Below are positions 571 to 58,600 of a stretch of DNA of 64,000 bases, piece by piece; the first letter of the stretch is position 1, and the number at the start of each line of letters is the position of its first letter. The stretch is from Lytechinus pictus. Its lineage: Eukaryota. A program made the translations under genes and the position numbers. The notes under the pieces were generated by a model, which was given only the letters and a program-made list of their open reading frames with translations, was not told the DNA's origin and searched no databases. The DNA lies in the NCBI RefSeq assembly GCF_037042905.1, contig NC_087246.1:51026001-51090000 (forward strand). Reading direction: 5' to 3'.

Positions 571-664
571 ACGATTATGAAGATAATAATTCCTTCCTTC
601 CCTTGCTGTAATGAACAGAACGAACGAGGTATTTTTTATTGTTTGCCTTTTTTCTCTTTTTCAG

Positions 665-1789
665 ATCTTAGTTTACTGTAAATACAACGACGATGAGGAT
701 GATGAAGATTGCGACTCGAGGATAAACGACACACGTAGAAAAGCTCCGATTGAATCAGACCGTCCGGAGGTCGTGCGAGAGACATACGCCGACATCGCTG
801 ATGCTTGCTTCAAACATGGAGGCCACGTGATCAATGCTGTACAGATCGTTGACATGCTGACGGTGGCAGCGCTGTATCTTCAGTTGTCGGGTGCCCTACT
901 GGTAGATACCTTTCCGCAAGCTGGATTAAACCGGTTTCTCTGGACAGCCATAACCGTCGTCGTGCTTCTTCCAACGGTGCTCTTCAAGAATCTTACCAGG
1001 ATATCGTGGTTGAGCCTGGTGGCTTTAATCGCTCTTGCCGTTATGTTATCAAGCGTAGTGTGGTACAGCTTTGGTCGTAGCATCCGCTGGAAGATGGAGA
1101 GCATCCCGCCGTTTTCCATCGAGCCCTTCGCCATCAGCGCCGCCATGATATCTCTCAATTTTGGGGCGCAGTTCTTGATGCCGGGAGTGGAAGGCAGTAT
1201 GCGTGAACCTTCAAAATTCAACACGATGCTCAACTACTCCTACATAGTTACAGGGTTTCTCAACGTTGGCTTCTCCCTCTTCGCCTTCTTGACCTTTGTG
1301 GAAGACACGCAGGAGTTCGTCACTTACAACATGCCTCGAGGACCACTCCAAGCTACTGTCAGTTGTCTTTTCGTCATCAAGTCTTTACTTACTTACCCGC
1401 TTATGATTTTTGTCATCGTGAGTACCGTCGACTCAATGAAGTTGTCGTTCCTGCCGCGTTGTTATCCAGAACAAGATGAGCGTTGTCCTCCTATTTGGGC
1501 CATCATTTTTAGGGTTATCCTAGTAGGCATGTCTTTCCTGATGGCTGTGGCAATTCCGCACTTCTCGTTGCTGATGGGTGTTTCTGGGAGTCTCACCGTA
1601 CCATGGCTGGACTATATATTTCCGTGTCTGTTTTATTTAAAGCTGAGAAAGACCAATATAGGAATGCTGGAGAAAGCATATCTTTGGTTCATCATCTTGC
1701 TAGGTGGAATAGCAGGTGCCGTAGGACTTTTCTATTCGTGTAGAGCTATGGTTAGGGCAATGTTAGGAGAAATCAATGATGGCTGGTAG
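665..1789 (+). CDS. Terminal coding exon of an SLC32/VIAAT (VGAT)-like amino-acid transporter (Aa_trans family); 5' exon(s) lie upstream, probably outside the window
   Basis: Polypyrimidine tract plus CAG acceptor at 662-664 (phase 0). The translation is collinear with the VGAT C-terminal part: VRETYADIADAC, FKNLTRISWLS, PGVEGSMREPSKF, KSLLTYPL, IPHFSLLMGVSGSLT. The ATG at 611 lies in intron sequence. Confidence 0.9.
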   Translation: MLVYCKYNDDEDDEDCDSRINDTRRKAPIESDRPEVVRETYADIADACFKHGGHVINAVQIVDMLTVAALYLQLSGALLVDTFPQAGLNRFLWTAITVVVLLPTVLFKNLTRISWLSLVALIALAVMLSSVVWYSFGRSIRWKMESIPPFSIEPFAISAAMISLNFGAQFLMPGVEGSMREPSKFNTMLNYSYIVTGFLNVGFSLFAFLTFVEDTQEFVTYNMPRGPLQATVSCLFVIKSLLTYPLMIFVIVSTVDSMKLSFLPRCYPEQDERCPPIWAIIFRVILVGMSFLMAVAIPHFSLLMGVSGSLTVPWLDYIFPCLFYLKLRKTNIGMLEKAYLWFIILLGGIAGAVGLFYSCRAMVRAMLGEINDGW

Positions 1790-6021: not shown

Positions 6022-7904
6022 GGAGGATAAAAAGAAATGTGATAATTGAATATCATTCTTCAATGTCTCAACAAGTATCAACAAGTGCATCTCGGATCAC
6101 GAGTTTCTATTTGTGTTCATGAATCAGATAAAAACTATCTTCTTCCTCTTTTTATTTTTGTTTTCTTGAGTTCCTTCCCTATGTTTTGACAATATACATG
6201 TGTGTGTGTGTGTGTGTTCCTGTCTCATTCATATTATTTTTTCATCACCATATATATATACACTTTAAAGGGGAAGTTCACCCTGACAAAAAGTTTATAG
6301 TTAAGATCACTAGATGAAAAAGCTGCTATAGGTGCAACTATTCATTTTGCTATTTTCACTTTTGCATTTTATTAGAAAAAAATAGATATTTCTGACTTGA
6401 GTATAGCAACAATAATAACGGTACTCATCATTATAATAAGCACCAGCGGGAATAAAGGAGATGTGTTTGTCGATAAGGAAGGGTAGGGAGCAAGCAGGAA
6501 TATCTGTCATTTAAAAATAAGCAATTTGAACCAAAAAATGTTACACTCACGCTACAGTACTCTGATTACAGATTCAATATGATAATATATATGTATAATT
6601 TTTGTAGTTCTATTTGAAAGTCATTTGGAAGAGTACTAATTAAAAATAATTTTTAAAATCAAACAGAAAATGTACAGTAAGTAGTTAAAGCAACAACAAT
6701 TAAGCAAACAAGGGAACGGACTAAAAGAAAATGTTTGTATGGAGCTTCAATGGCCACTTATATTGCAAAAAGTGTAGGTAAGAAACTTTCATTTAATAAT
6801 CATTTTTTAACATTCCATAACAATAAGCAAACATTTCTCACCATAATGATTCACATACATATCATTCTCAGTAAAATAGAAATTAAACTTGGAAAATTTC
6901 TCTTTTTCAAGACCAAGGCCAATTGCATGCCTAACGCACTACAACACTGCAGCGTTTGTCGGCGGTTTCCCCCTTTCCCCACCAACCCCACCCTGTCGCT
7001 CCGTCCTCTTTGTTCTTCCTTATTTATCAATTTTTGCGTCCTATAATTTCTTTCTGGACCCCTTCCCTCCTCACTGGAGTCTTTGTTGTGAAAGTTATTA
7101 TAAACTCTTTTTACGAGTGAATTACAAAAACGTTGTATTTGAAAGTCCAACGGTATTTAGAAATATCCTAACGATAAATAAAATAAAATATTCCTTTACT
7201 TCTACTTTAAGTGTTTTGGCACAAGACCATATCTAAACCCAATATTCCATAAATTATCTTGAGAAGGAAATACGTGAATAAAGAAAACTTGACACGCATA
7301 CTTGCCCTAATTCATTTTATGATATATACACAATTTTAAATATGACTAAAGGCAATGTTACTTTCGTTATTACAATCAAACTGTGGTTTGTATGGTCTGC
7401 TCACATTGTATACCCTGCATGTAATAGCTGTCAATCATTTCCATGCTGTCTGGAGCAGTGTGTATAGGTACGAACTACGAGAGGTCTGATTCTTTGAGTT
7501 GTGAAGCATTTTCATGAAAGATCCGGGGTAAGTAATTCTCTTATACTTTGTTTTAGGGTGATAAATTTTCAACTACAAGGATTTATGGTTCAATTCTTTT
7601 AAATAGCTACAAGCTGCAACATGTACAGTGGGGATTTGTTTATGGGTTTTTTAGTCAGAGATCTAATTTTGGTGAAAATTAGCAGAGTCGGTAATGCTAA
7701 CACCATGAGTGATTCAGCTAGTGCGACGTATCCCAATTGAAACGGCCTCACTAAGATTGCGAAATAGTTTTAATAAGAACATTTTTCTCACTTGCTTTTA
7801 TTCATTCATGTATCAAAATGGTAATGAGTATTGTTATCGTAACTGTTGATATCGGTAAACACATATCAATTAGATTATAATATAGACGAACATTATTTTG
7901 TGGC

Positions 7905-8620
7905 GTTATTCCGAAGGTTCGTTAAATTAGAAACGAAATAAGGTTCTTTATTCCGAAGGTTCGTGAGTCCGAAAACGAAATAAGGTTCGTTATTCCGAAG
8001 GTTCGTGAGTCCGAAAACGAAAAAGGTTCGTTTTTCCGAAGGTTCGTGAGTCCGAAAACGGAATAATATTCGTTATTCCCAAGGCTCGTTAGTCCGAAAA
8101 TGAAATAAGGTTCGTTATTCCGAAGTTTGGTAATTCGATAAATGAAATAATCTGTGGCAAAGCCGAGAAAACAGGAAAAATATCCGTTTGCACCAAAATG
8201 CCCATTTTGACATATAAGTGCCCTTTTTGGCTTTGCCCCCCAAACAAAATACGTCCCGCCGCCCCTGCCTTCCCATCCTCATAACAATTGAACAGCAACG
8301 GTGTTTCTATCCCCCCCCCCCCCCCTCCACCACACTTGTCCTTCCTGTTTCAAGGCTTCGCCACAGATTATTCTATTTTTCGGATTAACGAACCTTCGGA
8401 ATAATGAACCTTATTTCGTTTTCGGACTAACGAACCTTCGGATTAACAAACCTTATTTCGTTTTCAGGTTAACGAGCCTTCGGAATTACGAACCATCGAA
8501 ATTACGAACCTTCGGAATAACGAACCATCGGAATATTCGAACCTTCGGAATAACCGATGTAACCCAGGGAAATATTCGTTAGGGTATAGGCAATTTACGT
8601 GTTTCGGAATTACGAACCTT
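7905..8620. repeat. Foldback-type element with arms made of tandem sub-repeats
   Basis: Left arm has about six 42-bp units GTTATTCCGAAGGTTCGTGAGTCCGAAAACGAAATAAGGTTC (7905-8157). Right arm is the reverse complement with 16-bp subunits GAACCTTCGGAATAAC (from 8361). Confidence 0.8.
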
Positions 8621-9381
8621 CAGAACAGGGGCGGATTCAGGATTTGCAAAAAGGGGGTCACAATTTCCCGAGGATAATTTGACAAGCCAAAAAAAGTAGG
8701 TTTTCTCCTAAAATTGAAGGTCATTTCATGCATGCAATATTTGAAAAGCAAAAAAAAAAAAAAGGTCCTCATTTTTGTGTGAAGGACAAATATATGCTGT
8801 GACTTTCGAAAGAGGGGGCACACTCGTGTAAGACCGGCATATTCAAATTAAAAAAAATTGACTGTGGTTCTCAAATGATCCGCCAGTGCTTCGGAATTAC
8901 GGACTGTAATCTTTTTCCTCACAATATTTCAAGTTACGAATTGTTGGGGGTGAGGCTTACTTTGTCAAAAATGTAGTTTCGTCCACAAAACAGTCGACCG
9001 CAAGGTAGAATGGGTCGATAATAGCATCCCCGAAAATCTGACAAGTCCTCAGTGCATCCCTCCTAACAAAAGGGTTATCAACTAAAAACACAGTCGATAT
9101 TTTCTTAAAAGAAAATCTGACTAAAACAGGTTTACAAAAGAGAAGAAAGGGTATCAGATTATCAAGTCATACAAAATTGTCGGCAGTTTTTTTATTTGTC
9201 TTTTCCTTGTCTAACAGAAAGTATGTCAATTTCTTTTGGTACTATAGGTGACAACGAGACAAAATATCCTTCTTACCAGAGAGCCGGCGGTAAGAAGCAG
9301 CTGTTCAAAGGCATTCACGGTGTAAAAGTGTCGATGGTATAATATCAGCCTATATTCGTCATCGTCATCTTTATCCTAGTC

Positions 9382-11418
9382 ATGGTAGAACATCTAGATC
9401 AAAACAGCTCGACACAAACCACTCAGGTCTTCTCTGAAGACGCTGAAAATATCAGTCAAGACCGTCTTTCTCTCGACCCAGAGATTGATCCTCACGATCA
9501 TCAAATTGGACCTGATGTAGGAACTAGAACGTCCTCTGGTGATCGGAACCATTGGGTCACTGATCTAGTATCAAGGCAGAGAATCTCCCAGGGAACTAGT
9601 GCTTACCGTGTCGTTATGTATGTCATGGCAGCTACAGGACTCATCGTCATATATGTCCCGTTTCTTCCCCGGAAACATTCTGCAAAGACATTCTTCGCTA
9701 TGCTTTACGTTCTTCGTAATATATTTATGAATTTATTAGTAGTATCTGCACTCGTAGGTATGATATGGTTGACTCTGAGGGTAAAGAAATTGCATGAACG
9801 GGGATTGGTGCTGTGGCCTCAACGTTGTAAGCACTGTTTGAACATAATATGTCAGATCAAGTTCCGTGATTCAACCGTTGCCGTCGAGATTGGTGGCTTT
9901 TCCCCAAAACTGATTCCTGGTTCACTGAGTGAAGAACAACTTGACAACATCACAAGAGTCAGCAATGTAACGCTGAACATTTCGTATATATTTTCAGGTC
10001 TGGCTTTCCTATCCATACCACCTATCATAATGACAAATATCATGTGTTTAAACCAACACTCACCACACAACCCGACAGCCCAGACCAACAAGGAGCTGAC
10101 AATGCAGTTGTTGGTTGTTTTAAATCAATTTATCTATCTCTACATCTTGAATTTTCACTTCATCCCTACCTTTAAGGATGCCCACTTTGTTTCAGTGCCC
10201 AAGATATGGTGGTCTTTTGTCCTCCTAATCCAGGTTGCTATTTGGACATCCATCCAGAAGCTTTTGCGACCATTTGCAATTCTTGCTAATGGTGAGCACC
10301 GCACACCCTACCCGTGTCCGATGAATTCCACTTTAGGTGAAGTGCTTCATGGTATCAGTGATATTTCGCTAACATTTACAGTTGAACTTCCGGTTATGAT
10401 GGCACTTTTGCTAATTGAAATGTGGTCACAGATTCTCCCAGAGCATGTCAAATCCCTGATGAAAGACACAAACACATGCCAATCTACCATCTATATTAAA
10501 TCCATCACTCGACGTTCAAATTGGATCACTCTAAGAAACTTTACCAACAGAATTCTGAACAGAAGAAAGCTTTCCAAAAACCTATCTGAATTGTCACCAT
10601 TATTCAGTAATAATATTGAGATGGAGTCTGTACGTAGTTGTAATTTAGGCAACAGAATGAGTCATAATTTTACTTCAAGTTACCATCACCATTATAACAA
10701 GACTCTGAGAAACGAAACAGAAAAAGTATTATCAATAACTCTGCTGCTATGCGTCATATACTTTGGAATAAGCAATTACCTTCTATCTGGAGAAAATTAC
10801 CCCTATGCTGGCATCAACACCCAATGGTTTTTAGAAATGATGTTTTTCACGCCAGCGTTGCTGGTAATCATAAAACAGGCGAAAGTAACTAAAAAGGGCA
10901 ATCGAAATTTATCGACCAGATATGATGTACGTTCTGTCAACACCCCATCAGAAAAAAATAACATAATGCTTTTAATTTCTCTCTCTGGAGCATGTCTGTT
11001 TGATATGTTTTGTTTCGTGTCATCTTTAGGGAACCTCGTGTCAGGTCCTGAACTGTTATCCCATGAGGTGGTTCTTAACCTGATAAGCGTATTAAGCTGT
11101 GTCTTCGGTCTTCTTTGTAAATGCATCCAATCTACCTTTATCTTGAAGGTAGAGCATCAGCAACCCAAAGACTACCAGGCAATGAGATGGACATCCCTAT
11201 GCTTACTGGCTGTAGGAATGGTCAATGCTACACAGTGGTTATTGGATAGTTTGACCCATGAAGAAGAGTGGCCTGTCTTGAGTATGTTCTTTGAAGGAAA
11301 TGTAGGACTGGTCATCGGGATGATATTTGTACCATTCCTACATTTGTACGAACTCCATATTGCCATCATGGCATATGAAATCTATAAACACAAACGAGAA
11401 GAAAAATTGTGCATCTGA
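9382..11418 (+). CDS. Otopetrin-like (OTOP family) proton channel, 678 aa, single coding exon
   Basis: Twelve hydrophobic segments in two 6-TM halves. Family motifs: LTFTVELPVMMALLLIEMW (cf. PFxIEYxxxxxxxLYxMW), IQSTFIL, VNATQW (cf. CNxxLW), VPFLHLYELH (cf. LPxxIFYRxH). Good Kozak context gtcATGG with an in-frame upstream stop. Confidence 0.85.
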   Translation: MVEHLDQNSSTQTTQVFSEDAENISQDRLSLDPEIDPHDHQIGPDVGTRTSSGDRNHWVTDLVSRQRISQGTSAYRVVMYVMAATGLIVIYVPFLPRKHSAKTFFAMLYVLRNIFMNLLVVSALVGMIWLTLRVKKLHERGLVLWPQRCKHCLNIICQIKFRDSTVAVEIGGFSPKLIPGSLSEEQLDNITRVSNVTLNISYIFSGLAFLSIPPIIMTNIMCLNQHSPHNPTAQTNKELTMQLLVVLNQFIYLYILNFHFIPTFKDAHFVSVPKIWWSFVLLIQVAIWTSIQKLLRPFAILANGEHRTPYPCPMNSTLGEVLHGISDISLTFTVELPVMMALLLIEMWSQILPEHVKSLMKDTNTCQSTIYIKSITRRSNWITLRNFTNRILNRRKLSKNLSELSPLFSNNIEMESVRSCNLGNRMSHNFTSSYHHHYNKTLRNETEKVLSITLLLCVIYFGISNYLLSGENYPYAGINTQWFLEMMFFTPALLVIIKQAKVTKKGNRNLSTRYDVRSVNTPSEKNNIMLLISLSGACLFDMFCFVSSLGNLVSGPELLSHEVVLNLISVLSCVFGLLCKCIQSTFILKVEHQQPKDYQAMRWTSLCLLAVGMVNATQWLLDSLTHEEEWPVLSMFFEGNVGLVIGMIFVPFLHLYELHIAIMAYEIYKHKREEKLCI

Positions 11419-11427
11419 ATTTCATAG

Positions 11428-12543
11428 TAGGGGAAGGTGGGGCATAACGGAATTTGCATAAGTTAATTAAGTACGCCCTCTTAACAAATTATTTGCAGTA
11501 GACGACATGGCGGTATAACATCAAACATGAACTTTCATCCAGCAACATCTGAACACATCCGAGTAACGTCTCTTAAAAAATATTGCACCCTCGTGATCTA
11601 AGATAAGGGGATGATTAAAGAGCTGTAAATGTGTAGTTGCTGTATCAATTTTGATAAGATATATATTAATCATAAAGATATTAACGTTAGACACACGTTT
11701 TTGCATGCCTTCTTTGCTTCGGGAATTTTGCACGTAAACCGTTTTTATAAGTAAATATACACCATTAGGGCAAAATTGACTATAAACGTAAGGGACAAAA
11801 TGAAATGGAACAGGTTTCCGTTTTGCCCAAATCCATTGGACCATTTTACTCCAAGTATGTTCCATTTTGCCCCAATTGAAAATTACATTTTTTTTTTTTA
11901 AATCACGCGCTTTAAGATCAATCGCATTGTTTGTGGCAGTTGGATAACCTCAATGATAACGTTTAGGTGTATTTTTTGCAGGTCGCCATAAAGATGGTCA
12001 GGAACTACAAGTGGAAAACGACAAGACAGACATGGGATGAATAGGCAATGAAGGGTGTCATAAAAGGGGGAAGTTTCATTTTGCCTCAGTGGTGGGCAAA
12101 AGGGATTTTTTTTGGGGGGGATAAATAAATTCGAGTTTCTCTGGAATTTACACCTGCACTGCAAAAACTCCGGTGTTGATTTAACACCAGCCCGGAATCT
12201 ATATATGTCCACACCAGAGAAGTGTTAAACAACACCGGTTTCGGTATTAGTCTAAAACCAGATAGGTGTTTATACAACATCAATCAGTATTAAAACAGCA
12301 ACGGTTTGATTCCAAACTGGTGTTGTTTCAATACTTCCCTGGTGTGGACATATATTATATAGATTCTGGGCTGGTGTTAGATCAACACCGGAGTTTTTGC
12401 ATTGTGGAAAGTCATGAATTGTGGTTGATATAAAAAAGTACAAACAATTTTTATCTGATATTGTCAGTGTCATTGTCTCTGTGTCGGTGATGACGTCATT
12501 ATGCAAGTTCAAAATTATTCCATTATGCCCCACCCTCGCCTAA
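11428..12543. mobile_element. Non-autonomous TIR element immediately after the otopetrin stop
   Basis: TAGGGGAAGGTGGGGCATAACGGAAT at the left end, with an imperfect inverted ATTCCATTATGCCCCACCCTCGCCTA at the right end. Confidence 0.55.
12157..12404. mobile_element. Palindromic MITE, copy 1 (CACTG termini)
   Basis: Long inverted arms CACTGCAAAAACTCCGGTGTTG...CAACACCGGAGTTTTTGCATTG; second copy at 13170-13408. Confidence 0.8.
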
Positions 12544-28900: not shown

Positions 28901-31900
28901 AAACAAGGTTCAAAATCACAATATAGTCAACTGAATTGGGGCTAATATAGGTACTAGAGACAAGAGAAACGGCTCCTTTCCATTTTGATTTATGAAACAC
29001 CGAAAGCTTCGCGCGGGAGGGGGAAACTCCCCCTCCCTGCACCCACCCCCTAGGGAGCGCGCTTCGCGCGCTCTTTAAGTGTTGGCACGCTTCGCGTGCA
29101 TTTACCGCCCCTCCAAAATGAAATCCTGGCTACGCGGTTGTAATGAGTAAGCACCTAATCATCCCGAAATACTAACAAATGGGTGAGAAAGAGAAAAAAT
29201 AATCATTAAAAGATGGCAAAATGGAGCGGGAATTTATTGCGGGAAAGGGAAAGAAAGAGGCAAAAAGAAACGGCAAAACGAGGTAGAATGGAATGAGGTA
29301 AAATTATAAGGGAAGAGCTAAACTGCATGCTCGCTCGGCACCTTTTAGAAAATATTCCTTCATTTCCCATATTAAATGTTGTGCCCAATCAAAATATTTG
29401 GTTTGTTACGCCACCGCGTTGAAATAATGTGTTTTGTAAAACATGATATCCGTGATTTGATTGAAAATAGCGGCCACCCTTCAAGGTTTAATGTGGCTAA
29501 ATCTCGAGAGGTTCCTGGGCTCCGCCCCTGGACACCACCCACATGGCACTGGCGTACAAAATAATGGAAGGGTTTGGTGGTATAGCCCCCAAAAGTTCTA
29601 CGACCAAGAACAAAAAGGAAAAGGAGAACAGAAATAAAAAGATCGGAAAGTGTAAGATATGATGTTATGTTTTTTTAATCTGTCAAAATATATCACTAAG
29701 TAAAATTGTAATGATTTTTTTTTAATTCTCGCTCGCTTCGCTCGCTCGGTAATTTTATTAAGAAACTTTTGCCACACGCGCCATGATGTACCCCTCATTT
29801 CTTTTACTCATCACTCTAGCCACTCCGGCATAGAGCTTCGCGCCAACAATCATGAAAAATCCTGTTCATATCGTGATATGACCGGGAAATTTTGGGCTCT
29901 TGCCCCCTCCCCGGCCACCGACCCCTGTTACGCCCCTGCCTATTGTACATTACGAACTCATTGTTTAATTCATTTTAATGTCTTACATTATTTTACAATG
30001 CATACGATCTCACTAGGATTATTTTTTTGGGGGGGATCTGGAAATGAATTAAATGAAATATAATATGCACCATCATGTTATTTGCACCAATATTATGCAT
30101 AGTATAGATGGACATAATTGCGCTCATTGGCAACCCTTTGGGTGCGGGTATTGTACACCTTCGGTTTAATTTGAATCCCAATTTCTTTGTATGTGTGCAT
30201 TGGAAATGGAGATAAACAAGTGGAATAAAAGCACTTACCGTTATCTCCCGTGAACATGGAATCGTAGTCGATACAACGTAGTCGTTTGAATCCCTGGGCA
30301 CCAACTGACGACCCTGCAGTCTCAGCACAGAAGGAGTTCACGAGAGCAAAGTATGAGGCACTGAGATCAGAGACCATGATCTCATAGGTTGCGTCCATTA
30401 CCAAATCGTAATATAGGGCACAACTTCCGTTGTGCTGTTTTGATTCATACATAGGCTCAAGTTGTGGTTGTCTGGTATCATTCCATACCCTGATGACATT
30501 GAACACTCCATTAAATTCACAGGACGTTACGACCGTGATGAAGCCCGACGAGACGCCGTAAGTTGTGGCGTCTGGGACATAGATGTAAGTGTCGCCACTG
30601 ATGTATTGCTCCTCGGGAGGAATAGTTACCATGGCAGCGTTCACTGTTTTCAAGGCAACGACTTGGATCGGTTTATTGCTTGTGAGACGCGCCAGAGAGA
30701 GGTTTGTGCATTCTACGACAGTTTCTCCCTCGTCGAGAAGCGCAGTGATCACGGTGTCCAAGTTCATGGTGACGGTGGTGCCGTTTCTTCCTGCGACAAT
30801 CATGACGCAGAAGTCCTCGTCGTCTCCCGGAAACGAAGGAACGTTGAATACTGTACCCCAGCGATCAAACGGGGTCAGTTGCTCTATGACAGCGTCGCAA
30901 TCTTGATCCCAGTGTTCGTGTCCGGGTGAGAAGGCACAAGGTGTCCCACAAACCACAGACACTGGATGATCAGCCAGGAGGCGGGATCCACTGAAATCAT
31001 TCGTAAGTATCTTGATCAAAATATTCTTCCACGGTTCCAGGCAGAATTCTTTCTCATCCCCGCGATCGTAGTTTCCTCCGTTATAAACTTGAGCCCGGCC
31101 ATTGAATCGTATGTTCACTCGAGTTGAAGAGTTCATTGACGAGATGGTGGCATACCCGGGGGTCTGGCCGGTCATCGTAACGAGGAAGTACTCCTGTCCC
31201 AAATATTCTTCTGGAATTACACTGAAAGTTCCGTAGGAATCAACAGTTCTCTGAAATATCGGAAGGGTTCGATTGATATGAGATTTATAACGAGTATTTA
31301 CTTCCTTAAACTCAACACCGTAACCACCACCACCGTCATCAACAACAACCACATCAACATGGATGACGCTACAGGGGGCAGGGGTGACTGTCCGTATGAT
31401 TCTCCTCGAGGAATATATACAGAATGAGGAAGAGAGAAATGGAAGAAGAATAAAGAGAGGTCTGAGTGTGTCAAATAACTCATTGCCCCTGTTATTTATC
31501 TGAAAAAATGATGACGTTACCTTTGAAGTCATCATTTTCCCGCTGTCAAAATATTGAAGAATATATATCCATGACCATAAAAAAGATGCAACAGGAGAAA
31601 ACCAATATTTGTGTCCTTTTTATAACCTTAAAGTTTAATTCAATCTCAAGTAATTACGTCTTACACACTTTTTGTATATGAATTATAAATGAGTCATTAG
31701 TAATAGCTAGTCTGACTATCTAAATGTTTTCTTATAATTATGTGTTTTCTCATTTTAAAGGTGTGGCAACGTCTCATGCATAATTATGCTTACATTGCCA
31801 TACCTCTGTATGTCTGCCTCTGACATACAATCATTTGTGTAAATGAACATGTACCTCTTTTCATGTAAAAAAATATTAAATTTACTGTTGTAATGGTCAC

Positions 31901-35350: not shown

Positions 35351-35643
35351 GTGTTGACTCTCGATAAATTGTCTTGATTTCTTACTTACAAATAAAATAA
35401 CATCCATCATTCTGATAGTTTGATAATGACATAATTATTTAAGATTTAGTGAAGATGCTAAGATAAGTATAGACCTGGGTCTTGATACAAACAGGCATTT
35501 CAGGAGAAACTTGCATAATATTATACATAAGAGATGATCTAAATAAAAATTGGCCATCATGTCATGTACTATATCCGAGATTTTGCGAGCTATAAGCTTT
35601 GTTGATTTCACAAAACAGATTACCTTCTTTTCGTGTCTCATAG

Positions 35644-38371
35644 GTTTCCCAAAGCGCATCGGGAGTGTACATGCACAGGGACCTTTCTGCTCCACCCTCA
35701 ACGTAGCCCAATGCCGCAAGGAACTTATGAACAACTACCGGACATCGCTTTGTATGATCCTACTAGTTCCCTGGGATCCTAACTCTCACGTAGACATGAG
35801 CACCATTTTCACCAATGTCTGCCTTGTCACGGCAGACACATCTACTGCCAATAAACAATGGATCCTTCTGCCAGGTTCCTACAATGATATCCTGAAGGTT
35901 AAGGTCAACAATGCTAAACCTCTGCGGATTCTCATCGAGGGAAAGGCTGGGAGTGGGAAGACCACCTTAATGTCTAAGCTTGCCTATGACTGGATGGAGG
36001 AGTCGACAGACTCACCTCTCAAAGATGTCCCTCTCGTGTTTTGTCTTCAACTCCGTCTTCTCAACCAGGACGATGACTTCGGGGAGGCTGTAGTTCAGAA
36101 CCTGCTCCCCGAGGATACTCTCATCACTCCACAGCAGATAGAAGAGTATTCTCAGGCTAACCCAGATAAGGTGGTACTTGTTCTTGATGGATATGATGAG
36201 TTCATGTCAGACATTCAGGGTATCAAGGGCCTCGGGAACATCCTTAGAATCATCGAGAACAAGCGACTGACTGGATGTACGGTCATTGTAACGTCCAGAC
36301 CATGGAAGGCTACAGATTTCAAAGACCATCATCTTGCCAAGCACTATGCTCATATGACCGTTGAGGGCTTCTCTGATGATAGCACCAAAGTCTTCATTCG
36401 TAAGTACTTTCAAGACAACCTACAGCTTTCAGACAGCCTTTTGGCTTATCTTAAGGATAACCCTGCCATCCAGACAGTAACACCATTCCCTCTCTTCTGT
36501 GCTATGCTCTGCCAAGTATGGAAAGAAGAAAGAGATGCTCATAGAGAGGCAATGAAAGATATTGTTACACTCAGCAAGCTCTTCGATCATATCTTGAGAT
36601 ATCTCTGGGCTCACCACAACCAGAAGCACCTAACTGGACAATCTTCATCAAGGAAAGGTCAGGAATTGTCAAAGAGAATGACTCTTACTCGCAAGAGGGG
36701 AACTTCCGCTCATATAAAGATGGATATAGGCGTTTGTCTCAAGAAGATCGGGAAGATTGCTCTTGAAGGACTCATTAGTCCCGATAAGAAGCTCCAATTC
36801 AGTGAATATGACTTCAAGAAATGCCCCGATGTCCTCAAGGTAGCATGTTCTGTTGGGCTTCTTATCCGTCAGAAGAGTAACCCAACAAGTTCACGAAGAT
36901 TATCAAGACAAGATTCCATTCCTCATCACGGGATCACTTTCTTCCATAAACTGGCTCAAGAAAAGTGTGCTGGAATTTACCTGTCTTCCATGTGCACAAA
37001 GCAACCGAAGAAATTCGTGCAAACCCTCAAAGATGTCTACATATTGACCAGAGCAGACGAGTTCCGATATGTCCTGCAATTTGCCTGCGGTGAAGACCTT
37101 TACACCGCAAAGAAGATCCTCCGACACATGCCGAATATCACGCCTTATCAAAAGTTGGCATTAGAGTGCAACTTTGAGAGTCAGTCTAAGATCAAGTCAA
37201 ACAAGAGACTATCGAAGTTCTTTGTGACACAACGACTGTTCATGACCGGAAGACCGTCTGTCTACTCATTCAACGCCCTTGAATACTATATGAATAACTG
37301 TGAGATTCTCAGTCCGGAAGATGCTCCAGTCGCCTTCACATACTTTTCCACCGATGGCGTTGGGCCAGCCCAGCTTGGTAAGGTCACCAGCATCTTGAAC
37401 CAACCTCAACTGCAGTTTTTAATCCAGTTTAACATGGAACAGTCAAGAATCGAAGGCCCTGATGTCAAAGGCTTCATTGACTCACTCTCCCAGAAAGAGT
37501 TCATTGGTGTCCTAATGATGTCTTCAAACGTTGCTGGTCAACAGTTTGTGGAAAGTCTTCTTGAAATCCCTAAAGATGGCCTTAAATCAATGGTCATGAT
37601 GTACCTGCCAGTGCTCGATTCCAGGTGGGCCACCGATATCCTGAAGAAACTTCCTTCCATCTGCCCTAGAATCGGAGCACTGGAAGCTTCTTTCACACCC
37701 GAAGAGATTGCAGAAAGTGAGGATTCAGATAACCCGGAGGAAGACACAGAAGCTGAGATCTTTCCGTGTGACACAGGAAAATCATCATCAACACAATCAA
37801 TGGAAGGCAGAGATGTTGAATGCTGCTCATTTTCTGAACTCGCCACACTGTCGCTTAAGGGGTGTGTTCTCTGTCAGAAAGGATCAATGCAACTGGCATC
37901 AACCCTGTCGCTGGCGAAAAATCTGGAAAAGCTTCACTTGACGAAGCCATCGTTGCATTGTTCTTTCTACTCTCATCTGACCATCCTTGAATGTCTTCGT
38001 GAGTTCTCAGTAATTGATTACACATTCGGAAAGTTCAATCTAGACAAGTTCCTTGAGAAGTGCCCCATCTTGGAAGACGTCTATGTTGCCGCCATAGAGA
38101 ACCATCCCCACGATGTAAACGGTGTCATGAAGTCCCTTACCAATGCAATAGCTTACACCCCTGTGCTGAGGAGTATCACTCTCTGGTTTCCTGGTGAAGG
38201 TAGTTGCCGAGATGGTAGGATAGAGGATGGGGTCTTCAAGGAGTTCTGTGACGCAATCCTGCGGACCTCTCAACTCTCAAAGCTTCTCCTATGGCACGTT
38301 CCCCTCGGAACAGAACTGGTTATGAAGCTACTGGAAGTATGCAAGCAGCACAGGAATCTTATTACCATCAG
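35644..38371 (+). CDS. NLR gene: large NACHT-WHD-LRR exon
   Basis: Acceptor ctcatag|GT. Walker A GKAGSGKTT, Walker B VVLVLDGYDEF, VIVTSRP, VEGFS, PLFCAMLC, WHD FFHKLAQE, and degenerate LRRs (LATLSLKGC, LEKLHL, LSKLLLWHVPL). Donor AG|gtacat at 38372. Confidence 0.92.
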
Positions 38372-38989
38372 GTACATGTTTAAAACATAATACATTATTT
38401 GTGTCCAAAGTTTATGTTATTAAGCACAATGACTGAAAGAGATGTATCAACAGGTATAATCCATGGGGCACGACAATTTTACGTGATACAATTGTCAAAA
38501 ACAAAGCCTCCAAGCCCAAGGAAGATTTTGTGAAACTGTATGATAAAAAACAACACCACTGATCTCACACACCCTCGTCACAATCTTCTAATTTTTGTCT
38601 GTGTAATTTTATCTTTTTTTAAGATATGATTTTCTAACCCCATACTGGTATGGTTTAAAAATGTAACAGCCATTTTGGTAATTTTTTTGTATATTCGGCC
38701 CAGCCAATTGTTAAGTGATCTTTGTTCAACGTTTGATAATTTTTCGTTTCTTCTTCATTGACAAAGAACTAACATTGAAAATATATACATGTATATACTT
38801 GGTTTGATTGGCGATTATCAAAATGTTGAATATTTTTTAAACGAAAACGACCCCTGTTTATATTTGCTTGCACTTGATCAACTGTAGAAGTCGAACATTC
38901 CTGAAGTGAGTGCTAACCATCTTGATTTCATGTTTGGTAAAATCTTAAACCTTTTTAAAAATAGGTATACTTATAATTCATTTTAACAG

Positions 38990-55600: not shown

Positions 55601-58600
55601 TTTTCTGTAAGAAATGGCTGCCGGTATATTATGCATCTTCGCTTGCCTAATTCTTTGGAATGTTTGTCTTGGAGCAGATAATTTTGCAGATGAAAGAAGA
55701 TTTCTCCACCTTCAATGTGCTTCTATTTCTAAGACTACAGCCAAATGCTCTCATCTGAACCTCACTTCTGTACCCCAATCTCTACCAAATACCTTAGAAA
55801 TACTGGACCTGTCATTTAACAATCTCACAGCACTTCACAATGCATCATTTGAAAAGTACGACCTTCTTCGGATTCTGAATATCGCTCACAATTTCATCCA
55901 CGTCATCGAGAGCGGATCTTTTGCAAATCTCCGGGAAATTGAGACAATCATTTTGAATAACAACGTCATTCACGAACTGTCTGCAACTTTTCACATGAAC
56001 GATTCAAAACAAATAACTTTGATTCTGTCTCATAATGAAATGAGGGGAATCGCCCATCTGAATGGACTCTGTTTTACAGAGACAAAGAAAGAGAATACTG
56101 GAGATTCAGGGTCGAGAAATATAACCCTGATTGATTTCTCACACAACAATTTGACATCAGTTGAAGAAAAAGACTTTGCCTCTTTCAGTAACTGCTCTAT
56201 TTATAAATTCAAAATTGGGAATAATAAGCTGACACGTCTTCCAATGAATGTGTTTTCTGGATTATCTAGGGTGAGAAAACTTGATGTGAGCCATATAAAC
56301 CTTCAACAGTTTGAAGTTTCTTCCTTCTTAGGAATTGAAAGTATAATAGAGATTACATTGGAAGGATCACACATAAGGTCTATTGTACCGTTGAATGACT
56401 CCGCTTGCATCTCAAGTGGACAATTCACTAAACTTGAAATATTAAATCTGAGAGACAACAAAATAGAACAAGTTCCTGACTACACATTCTTGGCATTCAA
56501 GTACCTAGAGATCCTTGATCTGGGTACAAACAGAATAAGTTTTATATCAAACAAATCTTTCTGTGAAATGAGAAAGTTAAGGGTATTGAGTTTGCCAAGA
56601 AACAAAATCAAAAGTCTCCAGGATGGTGCTTTTTCTTGTCTTGGAAATTTAGAATACATCACATTGGCACAGAACAACTTGTTTATCTTGGAACCAGCTT
56701 GGTTTGCTCATTGTAAATCACTCAAAATTCTGAATCTTTTTCGGAGCAACATCAATGAAATTAAAGATGGTTCCTGGATCACACCCAATTTACGGATACT
56801 TGACTTATCATACAACAAGCTCAGTTCTATTGGAAGACTCATGTTTACAGGTCTATCTCATTTACGCATTCTGAAATTAACGGGAAATAACCAACTCTAC
56901 ACCATCAAAGGTGATACCTTCAGTAATATGACGGCTCTCAGATCTCTTGAAATGGACAACATAGCCAGGCTAGTTCTGAATGACACTTTTGCTGAGTTAA
57001 GAAGCCTAATCTACTTGGACTTTTCTTTCCTTTACTCCCATGGGGCACAAATTGCCTCTGTACACCAATTTACACACACCTCTGCATTACAAACATTAAA
57101 TATGTCATTCTGTTTTATCCATTCTCATGATTTGGTGAACACTAAAACAAAAGGATCACTTTTTGATGGGCTAACATCCCTTCGCACTCTTCGAATGGTA
57201 GGAAATAATCTTGTTGGTTTGCCCAATGTCTCTTGGATGTTTTCTCCCCTACAGCGAATGGAAATCCTTGATTTAGGCCATTGTCAACTGCATTCACTGA
57301 CATCAGAGTTATTTAAGAACCTGAGTAGCCTACAAGAACTCAGACTCACTAACAACGAGCTGGTGGACATATCTGAACATGCATTCCAGAATTTGCACAA
57401 TTTGCATAATCTTCTTCTCCAATTCAACAAAATAAACTCAATAGGTAAAAACTTGTTTAAAGAAACCGCTAATCTACGACGGCTGCTCCTAAATAGCAAC
57501 CAGATATCTATGGTAGCACCTAATACAATAATACCATCACACTTGAAAGTGTTTAACATTGCAGGAAACCAACTGATCTGCAACTGTCAACTAACTTGGT
57601 TCATGCAGTGGCTCCGTTCTACAAATGTCTCGTTGGGACCACAGAATGAAACATTGTGTTCCATTCATTCATTCAGTGAACTTAAGAACAAGCCAGTTTG
57701 GACATTTCATCCAGAAAAATACTGTGGAATCAACACCCTCCTACTTACTGGTGTTAGTTTTGCAATCATTGCAGTCTCCCTACTCTGTCTTCTGGTCTAT
57801 TACAAGCGCTGGTGGTTCGACCACAAGATATTCCTTCTGAAACTAGCCATCATTGGCTATGATGAAATCACAGAGGATGCTGATCCAGATGACTATGAAT
57901 ACCAGCTTAACATCATGTTCCATGACGATGACACCGAGTGGGTTAATGAAAATATGAGGCCTGCACTGGAAGAAAGGATGCCTCATCTGCAGAACATTGC
58001 CTTCGGAGATGAAGCCCTTCATCCAGGGATGTACTATCTCAATGCCTTAAATCATAACCTTGATAACAGCTTCAAGACAGCCTTGTTGATCAGTAACAAG
58101 TCAGTGGGTGATGCTTGGTTCATGACCAAGCTACGGATGGCCGTTGAGCATGTGAATGACACCAAGTTAGACAAGATCATCTTGATATTCCTAGAGGACA
58201 TCAAGCAAGCCAACTTACCATATCTTGTAAGACTCTTGCTAAGTAGGAACAAACCTTATTTGTTGGTTACAGAAGATGAAGATGGTCAAGAGTTGTTCTG
58301 GGCTCAGTTTGAAAAAGAAATGAGGACCAACAAGGTTCTCAACAGTGTTATTCCAACTTAAACCTGATGCAACACCAAGAGTTAAAATCCTGTATATGGG
58401 GTTTCTCAAAGGCTTATGCTTGGATTTTTTTCATGAGCATGAAAAACTTAACACAACTTCAGTTTTTAATGTTACTGTTTCTGAAAGCACTGGATTAGCA
58501 ATTTTAGAAAATTCAAAATTCAAAATCCTATCATTTCATCTTTTTTTAAAAGTTGATATATTTTTATTGACTCCCAAATGACCTTTGACATTGCCTATTG

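Follow-up and report, generated by a model that had tools for sequence, protein, structure and literature searches.

A single-exon gene of Lytechinus pictus belongs to a divergent, otopetrin-like sea-urchin family with an altered FYR box

Otopetrin channels (PF03189; OTOP1-3 and C. elegans OTOP8, structures 6NF4, 6NF6, 6O84 and 8UG4-8UGA) depend on a Glu in transmembrane helix 6 (TM6) and a His in TM12, both of which are essential (PMC6483595) and together form a proton relay (PMC11343839). The roles of the TM6 Glu and of a Pro in the same helix have been described (PMC11343839, PMC6483595), and in XtOTOP3 the substitutions D509N/A slow desensitisation (PMC6483595). TM12 also carries the FYR (Phe-Tyr-Arg) box, described as present in all otopetrin domain proteins (ODP; PMC2268672). 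In zebrafish Otop1 the FYR Arg, R572, is salt-bridged to E429, which lies four residues before the triad Gln (Gln-4) on the same helix, and in mouse OTOP1 the single substitutions E433R and R586E greatly reduce current, while part of it returns in the double swap (Saotome et al., bioRxiv 10.1101/542308). Among invertebrates, C. elegans has eight otopetrin-like genes (PMC9909269), and Drosophila OtopLa acts in acid taste (PMC8713817). Sea-urchin otopetrins were represented by fragments only in the survey of Hughes et al. 2008; since then Otop2l, the proton channel of skeletogenic cells, has been described as a canonical otopetrin that is activated by alkali, Mg2+ and Ca2+ and is confined to primary mesenchyme cells (PMC13000164). 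Here we describe a gene at positions 9382-11418 of the window, a 64,000-nucleotide stretch of Lytechinus pictus DNA (G000:C2:51026001-51090000 of an 812-Mb genome), and find that its product is a strongly divergent relative of these channels.

The gene consists of a single uninterrupted open reading frame (ORF) of 678 amino acids plus stop, within which the two halves of the protein are delimited as follows.

9382 to 11418, forward strand: complete single-exon ORF of the divergent otopetrin-like protein, taken from the ORF call, with start and length class as in the L. variegatus RefSeq model LOC121407607.
9589 to 10425, forward strand: N-domain, residues ~70-348, TM1-TM6 of the otopetrin fold (AlphaFold2 helices; structural alignment over residues 55-675 on OTOP chains).
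10672 to 11412, forward strand: C-domain, residues ~431-677, TM7-TM12 (AlphaFold2 helices; structural alignment).

A preliminary description of this DNA, aligned by eye, had placed an otopetrin-like channel at 10100-11358. That interval lies inside the real ORF, but position 10100 is an internal Met and the gene begins 720 nt upstream. The two short motifs on which that description rested, LYELH at 11344-11358 and VEL at 10381-10389, are encoded exactly where it put them, and its view of the locus as an intact otopetrin-fold gene agrees with both the uninterrupted frame and the structural matches to otopetrins.

These structural matches are specific. The AlphaFold2 (AF2) model (predicted local distance difference test, pLDDT, 81; predicted template modelling score, pTM, 0.80) shows 12 TM helices arranged in two related helical barrels. 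In a Foldseek search of the PDB, 12 otopetrin entries alone scored at E<=1e-3 (4e-6 to 7e-4), with the next match at 0.026. Similarly, VIA-align matched the model to all 12 solved otopetrin entries at Z 21.8-28.7 and a root-mean-square deviation of 2.7-3.6 A, covering 351-418 target residues and up to 396/400 of a target, while the next fold reached only Z 11. The preliminary description had made its assignment depend on an otopetrin hidden Markov model (HMM) or fold match: the fold indeed matches otopetrins alone, but the PF03189 HMM does not match. From these results, we conclude that the gene encodes what is predicted, on the strength of the model, to be a 12-TM double-barrel membrane protein of the otopetrin fold.

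Sequence comparison leads to the same family by a longer route. Language-model features placed the protein nearest to otopetrin clusters (0.91, 209 shared features), although identity to otopetrin channels is only 10-14%. When the single protein was used as the query, no chain was matched in a PDB sequence search, and a word-indexed homolog search returned just two relatives (one for a paralog from the array on contig C18, described below), with uninformative names. We then built a profile (A1) from the closest three sequences, all of them without a Pfam match, and searched it against 1.84 billion representatives. This profile finds 92 proteins, including the PF03189-positive P0066 of the brittle star Amphiura (E 5.7e-7), P0080 of the acorn worm Saccoglossus (whose own PF03189 E is 6.8e-40) and P0069. 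Moreover, hhalign joined the nine-sequence clade that contains our gene to eight PF03189-positive proteins with a probability of 99.8% (E 2e-30, 545 columns, local mode). Homology to otopetrins is thus solid, the link to the solved OTOPs running, as far as profiles can trace it, through ambulacrarian intermediates, and the locus very probably holds a real otopetrin-family gene.

To place individual residues, we took equivalences from HMMER, hhalign and MAFFT profiles and checked the reference numbering on PDB sequences; the register is therefore one of sequence profiles, as the structural tools gave ranges and no residue-level superposition. The positions that matter for the proton pathway are these.

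10372 to 10389, forward strand: TM6 core T331-F-T-V-E335-L336; the Glu is kept (E335, equivalent to XtOTOP3 E321), Thr takes the place of the hinge Pro (Glu-4) and Leu that of the triad Tyr.
10960 to 10962, forward strand: N527, at the position of the TM9 Asp (XtOTOP3 D509), the hydrogen-bond partner of the TM12 His.
11116 to 11130, forward strand: TM10 segment C579-K580-C-I-Q583; Q583 is the C-barrel Gln and 579 (Gln-4) the position of the FYR-Arg partner.
11224 to 11238, forward strand: N615-A-T-Q-W619, the C-barrel triad Asn with the Trp at Asn+4 (W619, invariant).
11332 to 11358, forward strand: TM12 segment P651-F-L-H654-L-Y656-E657-L-H659; the hinge Pro, the Tyr and the His (H659, equivalent to XtOTOP3 H669) are kept, Arg is Glu, and His654 is an extra, clade-specific residue.

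Both residues of the inter-barrel relay are thus present. E335 and H659 are at least 90% conserved across 34 sequences of the divergent family, and a TM6 Glu/Asp and the TM12 His are retained in 24/24 paralogs of the same genome. In P0039 and P0051 the TM6 Glu is Gln and the TM12 His is lost as well (P0076 lacks the TM12 column); this joint loss is anecdotal support for a functional pair, and a tree-based co-variation test of Glu335 against His659 yielded two independent pairs with p>=0.5. The C-barrel constriction triad is complete (Q583, N615, Y656), its Gln lying in IQSTF and its Asn in VNATQW, as the preliminary description had held. Most of the divergent family has Met in place of this Gln. 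That description had also set VEL on the canonical IEY, with Glu kept and the triad Tyr lost, and HMMER and hhalign agree. The text of PMC6483595 numbers the XtOTOP3 C-pore Gln 585, while the chain in PDB 6O84 has Q-x-x-x-Q at 554/558; residue 558 is evidently meant, and we have followed the chain sequence here.

The N-barrel is different. Its Gln-Asn/Asp-Tyr triad is occupied by N257 or L256, A286 and L336 in the profile-based register, which concerns two further segments.

10150 to 10152, forward strand: N257, at or one residue from the N-barrel Gln; the MAFFT column is that of Gln, while hhalign puts the Gln on L256, next to a gap.
10231 to 10245, forward strand: Q284-V-A286-I-W288; in both MAFFT and hhalign the column of the canonical N-barrel Asn/Asp is that of A286 and not of Q284.

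Here W288 corresponds to the first Trp of the ambulacrarian W-x-W, a Pro follows at Trp+9 in both groups (P297), and the canonical Asn+4 Trp corresponds to S290. Where this protein has Q284, its closest relatives have G, E or V. The preliminary description had proposed a reciprocal exchange of Gln and Asn in this domain. Its placement of N257 on the Gln column holds in the MAFFT family alignment but is one residue off in hhalign, and Q284 is not the Asn equivalent. Because the Asn falls on A286 and Q284 is not conserved in the clade, the exchange is unsupported, an artefact of aligning by eye. As the alignments have it, the N-barrel triad is lost and appears degenerate across the whole divergent family.

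The most conspicuous substitution lies in the FYR box. HMMER and hhalign both align LYELH to the canonical FYRxH, and the Arg-to-Glu reversal reported earlier is real, with Tyr and His kept: the FYR Arg (zebrafish R572, mouse R586) is E657. The gene is nevertheless no ordinary paralog with a few swapped residues: the FYR Arg is generally absent family-wide, and the position is Glu in the whole clade and mostly Gly elsewhere in the family. We also considered its partner at position 579, whose Gln-4 location we verified in zebrafish OTOP1, chicken OTOP3 and XtOTOP3. Arg579 occurs together with Glu657 in 6/8 of the other full-length clade members, in the fragment P0006 and in two Diadema-type sequences, while PF03189-positive ambulacrarian proteins mostly have Gln579 with Arg657. 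The paralog on contig C5 is an example of a clade member with Arg579. It is mechanistically plausible that Arg579/Glu657 forms a natural, polarity-inverted salt bridge in this clade, the counterpart, at the same positions, of the engineered mouse E433R/R586E. Unlike the double mutant, our gene has Cys at 579, adjoining Lys580, as does its ortholog in L. variegatus; both would thus resemble the poorly conducting R586E unless Lys580 or another residue compensates.

Beyond the barrels, the divergent family has a feature of its own.

9793 to 9837, forward strand: H138-x6-W145-P146-x2-C149-x-H151-C152, a family-specific motif in the loop after TM2 (pLDDT 90-95).

Across the 34 sequences P146, C149 and C152 never vary, and conservation of H138, W145 and H151 is at least 90%; this H..WP..CxHC motif is extra relative to otopetrin channels and is missing from most PF03189-positive relatives. 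By canonical topology the loop would be cytoplasmic. A metal site is our guess for its role, and it may alternatively be a palmitoylation cluster. C222 and C312 are also among the invariant or near-invariant positions; by predicted topology both would be extracellular, and they could form a disulfide. An extracellular TM5-6 loop with a Cys and an N-x-T sequon is part of the predicted topology shared with otopetrin channels.

The gene is one of many. A search of its own genome with the protein gave 53 matches, and 24 further intact single-exon ORFs of 627-716 amino acids were recovered from 20 fetched regions. The family therefore comprises at least 25 intact copies including this gene, a lower bound, plus pseudogenes. 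Their main locations, by contig (the window lies on C2), are these.

C18, 19.99-20.18 Mb: tandem array of near-identical copies.
C2, C5, C12 and C17: further intact copies.
C2, 51.36-51.39 Mb: stop-riddled or fragmented copies, 330-355 kb from the gene.

The C18 array (loci L016-L025 and L031) contains at least 12 intact, near-identical ORFs of 651-716 amino acids with truncated copies between them; the TM6 Glu/Asp and the TM12 His are found in every ORF, and in most of them Asp occupies the FYR-Arg position. The damaged C2 copies (51363276-51365289, 51383764-51385675 and 51389122-51391210; L004, L008-L013) lie beyond the gene. Two of the three sites are paralogs of its own clade, with 63-68% identity over most matched pieces and multiple in-frame stops, and the third, at 51.384 Mb, is more distant (34-42% identity) and split into two ORFs. 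Their presence suggests local birth-and-death evolution around the gene.

Pfam searches of 10 of these own-genome paralogs gave no match for 9/10 and, for the remaining one, PF03189 at 24.6 bits, short of the threshold of 27.8. The genome also has a canonical otopetrin, a distinct gene on C1 and the one PF03189 locus that was found; in contrast to our single-exon gene, it is matched exon by exon. We built a maximum-likelihood tree with 62 rows and placed its root on the PF03189-positive set; in it the divergent family forms a group of 51 rows (Shimodaira-Hasegawa-like approximate likelihood ratio test, SH-aLRT, 99), within which our gene falls in a nine-row clade with support of 100 and a long stem of 1.14 changes per site. 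Every named member of the family comes from a sea urchin (L. variegatus or Diadema antillarum) and bears the label 'uncharacterized', and a full-text literature search found no account of such a single-exon divergent otopetrin family. The earlier term "intact paralog" is thus half right: the gene is intact, but instead of an ordinary OTOP paralog it is a member of a deep, Pfam-invisible, single-exon family. This otopetrin-like family is fast-evolving and has ambulacrarian canonical relatives. The gene shares phylum and superfamily with Otop2l but belongs to a separate family, the genome's PF03189 locus lying on another contig. Lineage-specific multiplication is also known from other invertebrate otopetrins, some of them chemosensory; the C. 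elegans and Drosophila proteins, however, keep the FYR box and the PF03189 match, whereas the family described here is larger, single-exon and tandem, and lacks the FYR Arg.

Comparison with L. variegatus demonstrates that the gene is evolutionarily maintained. The closest public protein is the 676-amino-acid 'uncharacterized protein LOC121407607' of that species, 92-93% identical, and over ~9.5 kb the window and its L. variegatus counterpart (L015) are collinear, the ORF being ~95.7% identical at the nucleotide level versus 76-88% for the flanks. Against this syntenic ortholog, the Nei-Gojobori method gave a dS of 0.092, a dN of 0.031 and a ratio of nonsynonymous to synonymous rates (dN/dS) of 0.34. 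The 87 changes comprise 48 nonsynonymous and 39 synonymous ones, a nonsynonymous deficit relative to the 78% expected (binomial p 2e-6). At this Lytechinus divergence a neutral sequence should have gathered about 8 nonsense changes (P about 2e-4), and every indel between the two ORFs is in frame. These data show purifying selection.

With the fold, the homology, the intact ORF, the purifying selection, the family expansion and the residue map established, we propose that this is a functional single-exon gene whose product has a divergent otopetrin-type proton pathway with altered gating, a reading to which we give a probability of roughly 0.6. For a proton-conducting or proton-gated function as such, we put the odds at about even. 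The protein would still move or sense protons through the inter-barrel relay of canonical otopetrins (Su et al. 2024, PMC11343839), TM6 Glu335 taking a proton from outside and passing it to TM12 His659; we infer this relay because, across the entire divergent family, no polar positions are conserved better than these two. Gating would be unlike that of OTOP1-3 for five reasons: the FYR-box Arg is Glu657; Cys579, in the gene and its Lytechinus ortholog, leaves Glu657 only the neighbouring Lys580; in TM9, Asn527 replaces the Asp that pairs with the His; TM6 has Thr331 in place of the hinge Pro; and the N-barrel Gln-Asn-Tyr constriction is absent. Desensitisation, too, may be altered by E657, C579, N527 and T331. 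The altered pH gating or selectivity suggested in the preliminary description is likewise a reasonable possibility.

Several results weigh against this proposal. Searched as a single protein, the sequence matches no Pfam family even at E<=1, PF03189 included, and so does not reach the PF03189 gathering score. A profile built from the divergent family alone (A4) left the solved vertebrate and nematode OTOPs unmatched among PDB sequences, so that an earlier match with another profile (A2) depended on the canonical members in its alignment; the input alignment of the AF2 model likewise contained canonical otopetrins. Two pathway positions have changed, the TM9 Asp and the TM6 hinge Pro, the latter only in this gene and its Lytechinus ortholog. 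The partner position of Glu657 holds a Cys instead of an Arg, and R586E by itself strongly lowers the current of mouse OTOP1. The C18 array combines Asp657 with no basic residue at 579/580, and on the tree the co-variation of acidic 657 with basic 579/580, at four independent pairs and p>=0.5, is statistically unsupported. The dN/dS is relaxed for a channel. Finally, RNA depth over 8936-11941 was zero in three raw RNA sequencing runs under the same species label, of each of which ~25% (~1.9 Gb) was read; as the tissue and stage of the samples are unstated, this is no demonstration of silence. Run X1, indexed as containing 29% of the words, had no piece that fell on the ORF and is uninformative.

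A distinctly less likely alternative is that the otopetrin fold has been put to a new use, as a non-proton sensor, receptor or transporter, or as a non-conducting regulatory subunit pairing with other family members. The large tandem family of single-exon genes would then be an environment-facing receptor repertoire, and the number of intact copies, the near-identical C18 array and the nearby pseudogenes do form a birth-and-death pattern. The family-wide loss of the N-barrel triad and of the FYR Arg, the Met that replaces the C-barrel Gln in most members and the new invariant loop motif would also fit. Against such a change of function, the most conserved polar feature of the family is precisely the TM6 Glu and TM12 His, a pair without known role besides proton transfer, and loss of the TM6 Glu is accompanied by loss of the His in both readable rows, as expected of a working pair.

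It is improbable that we are looking at early decay, in which the frame is open by recent history while the protein has been functionally dead since it lost Arg579, Pro331 and Asp527. The lineage-specific changes R579C and P331T do fall at positions conserved in nearly all relatives, three pseudogene or fragmented paralogs lie on the same contig, and the zero RNA depth and the dN/dS value point the same way. Yet a 2-kb frame has been kept in both Lytechinus-type orthologs with in-frame indels alone, and the missing nonsense changes and the nonsynonymous deficit are those of a constrained protein. Moreover, C579, T331 and N527 are common to both species, which indicates that the gene persisted with them. 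Very improbable indeed is an otherwise canonical paralog with N-barrel Gln and Asn exchanged, for although N257 lies at or beside the Gln column and Q284, four residues before a Trp, mimics the canonical N-x-x-x-W spacing, the Asn column falls on A286 in a register that ties W288 and P297 to the ambulacrarian W-x-W...P, Q284 varies among relatives, PF03189 is unmatched and the long stem sits in a separate family.

A wider proposal, which we put forward tentatively and regard as rather unlikely, is that sea urchins possess a hitherto unrecognised, Pfam-invisible, single-exon repertoire of otopetrin-derived receptors or channels that serves as a diversified pH/ion chemosensory system. With 25 or more intact genes here in several deep clades, it would rest on the Glu-His relay, with a C-barrel salt bridge rewired clade by clade and a putative new cytoplasmic H..CxHC metal site, and our gene would then stand for the inverted-bridge (Arg579/Glu657) clade.

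The surroundings of the otopetrin-like gene are rich in single-exon genes of innate-immune type. Other large ORFs in the window include these.

611 to 1789, forward strand: ORF of 392 amino acids that matches Aa_trans (PF01490) strongly and is probably one large exon of a gene for an amino-acid transporter.
30093 to 31535, reverse strand: ORF with an IgGFc_binding domain.
35550 to 38390, forward strand: ORF with a NACHT domain (NLR-like).
55614 to 58361, forward strand: ORF with LRR and TIR domains (Toll-like receptor).

RNA sequencing reads are abundant on 7767-8768 and 12109-12442. They are repeat-derived, 96-98% of them continuing into unlike sequence, with many inverted joints; these are transcribed dispersed repeats that flank the gene, not the gene locus. 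The Logan contig L036, which carries a family member and at 2469 nt looks transcript-sized, was considered as evidence of expression and rejected, as it lacks a poly(A) tail.

What makes the locus interesting is thus less the proposed Gln/Asn swap, which is unsupported, than a family missing from annotation and a salt bridge of tested function that nature has rewired. The divergent family amounts to a natural mutagenesis series in which the Glu and His are kept while the N-barrel triad, often the C-barrel Gln and the supposedly 'universal' FYR Arg have been discarded, and this pattern of retention and loss favours the inter-barrel Glu-His pathway. It offers variants for recording, including a natural salt-bridge swap of the E433R/R586E type. 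Dozens of otopetrin-fold genes now carry the label 'uncharacterized', and their products are candidate pH or ion sensors, as yet unannotated, in animals in which the pH of seawater affects both calcification and behaviour.

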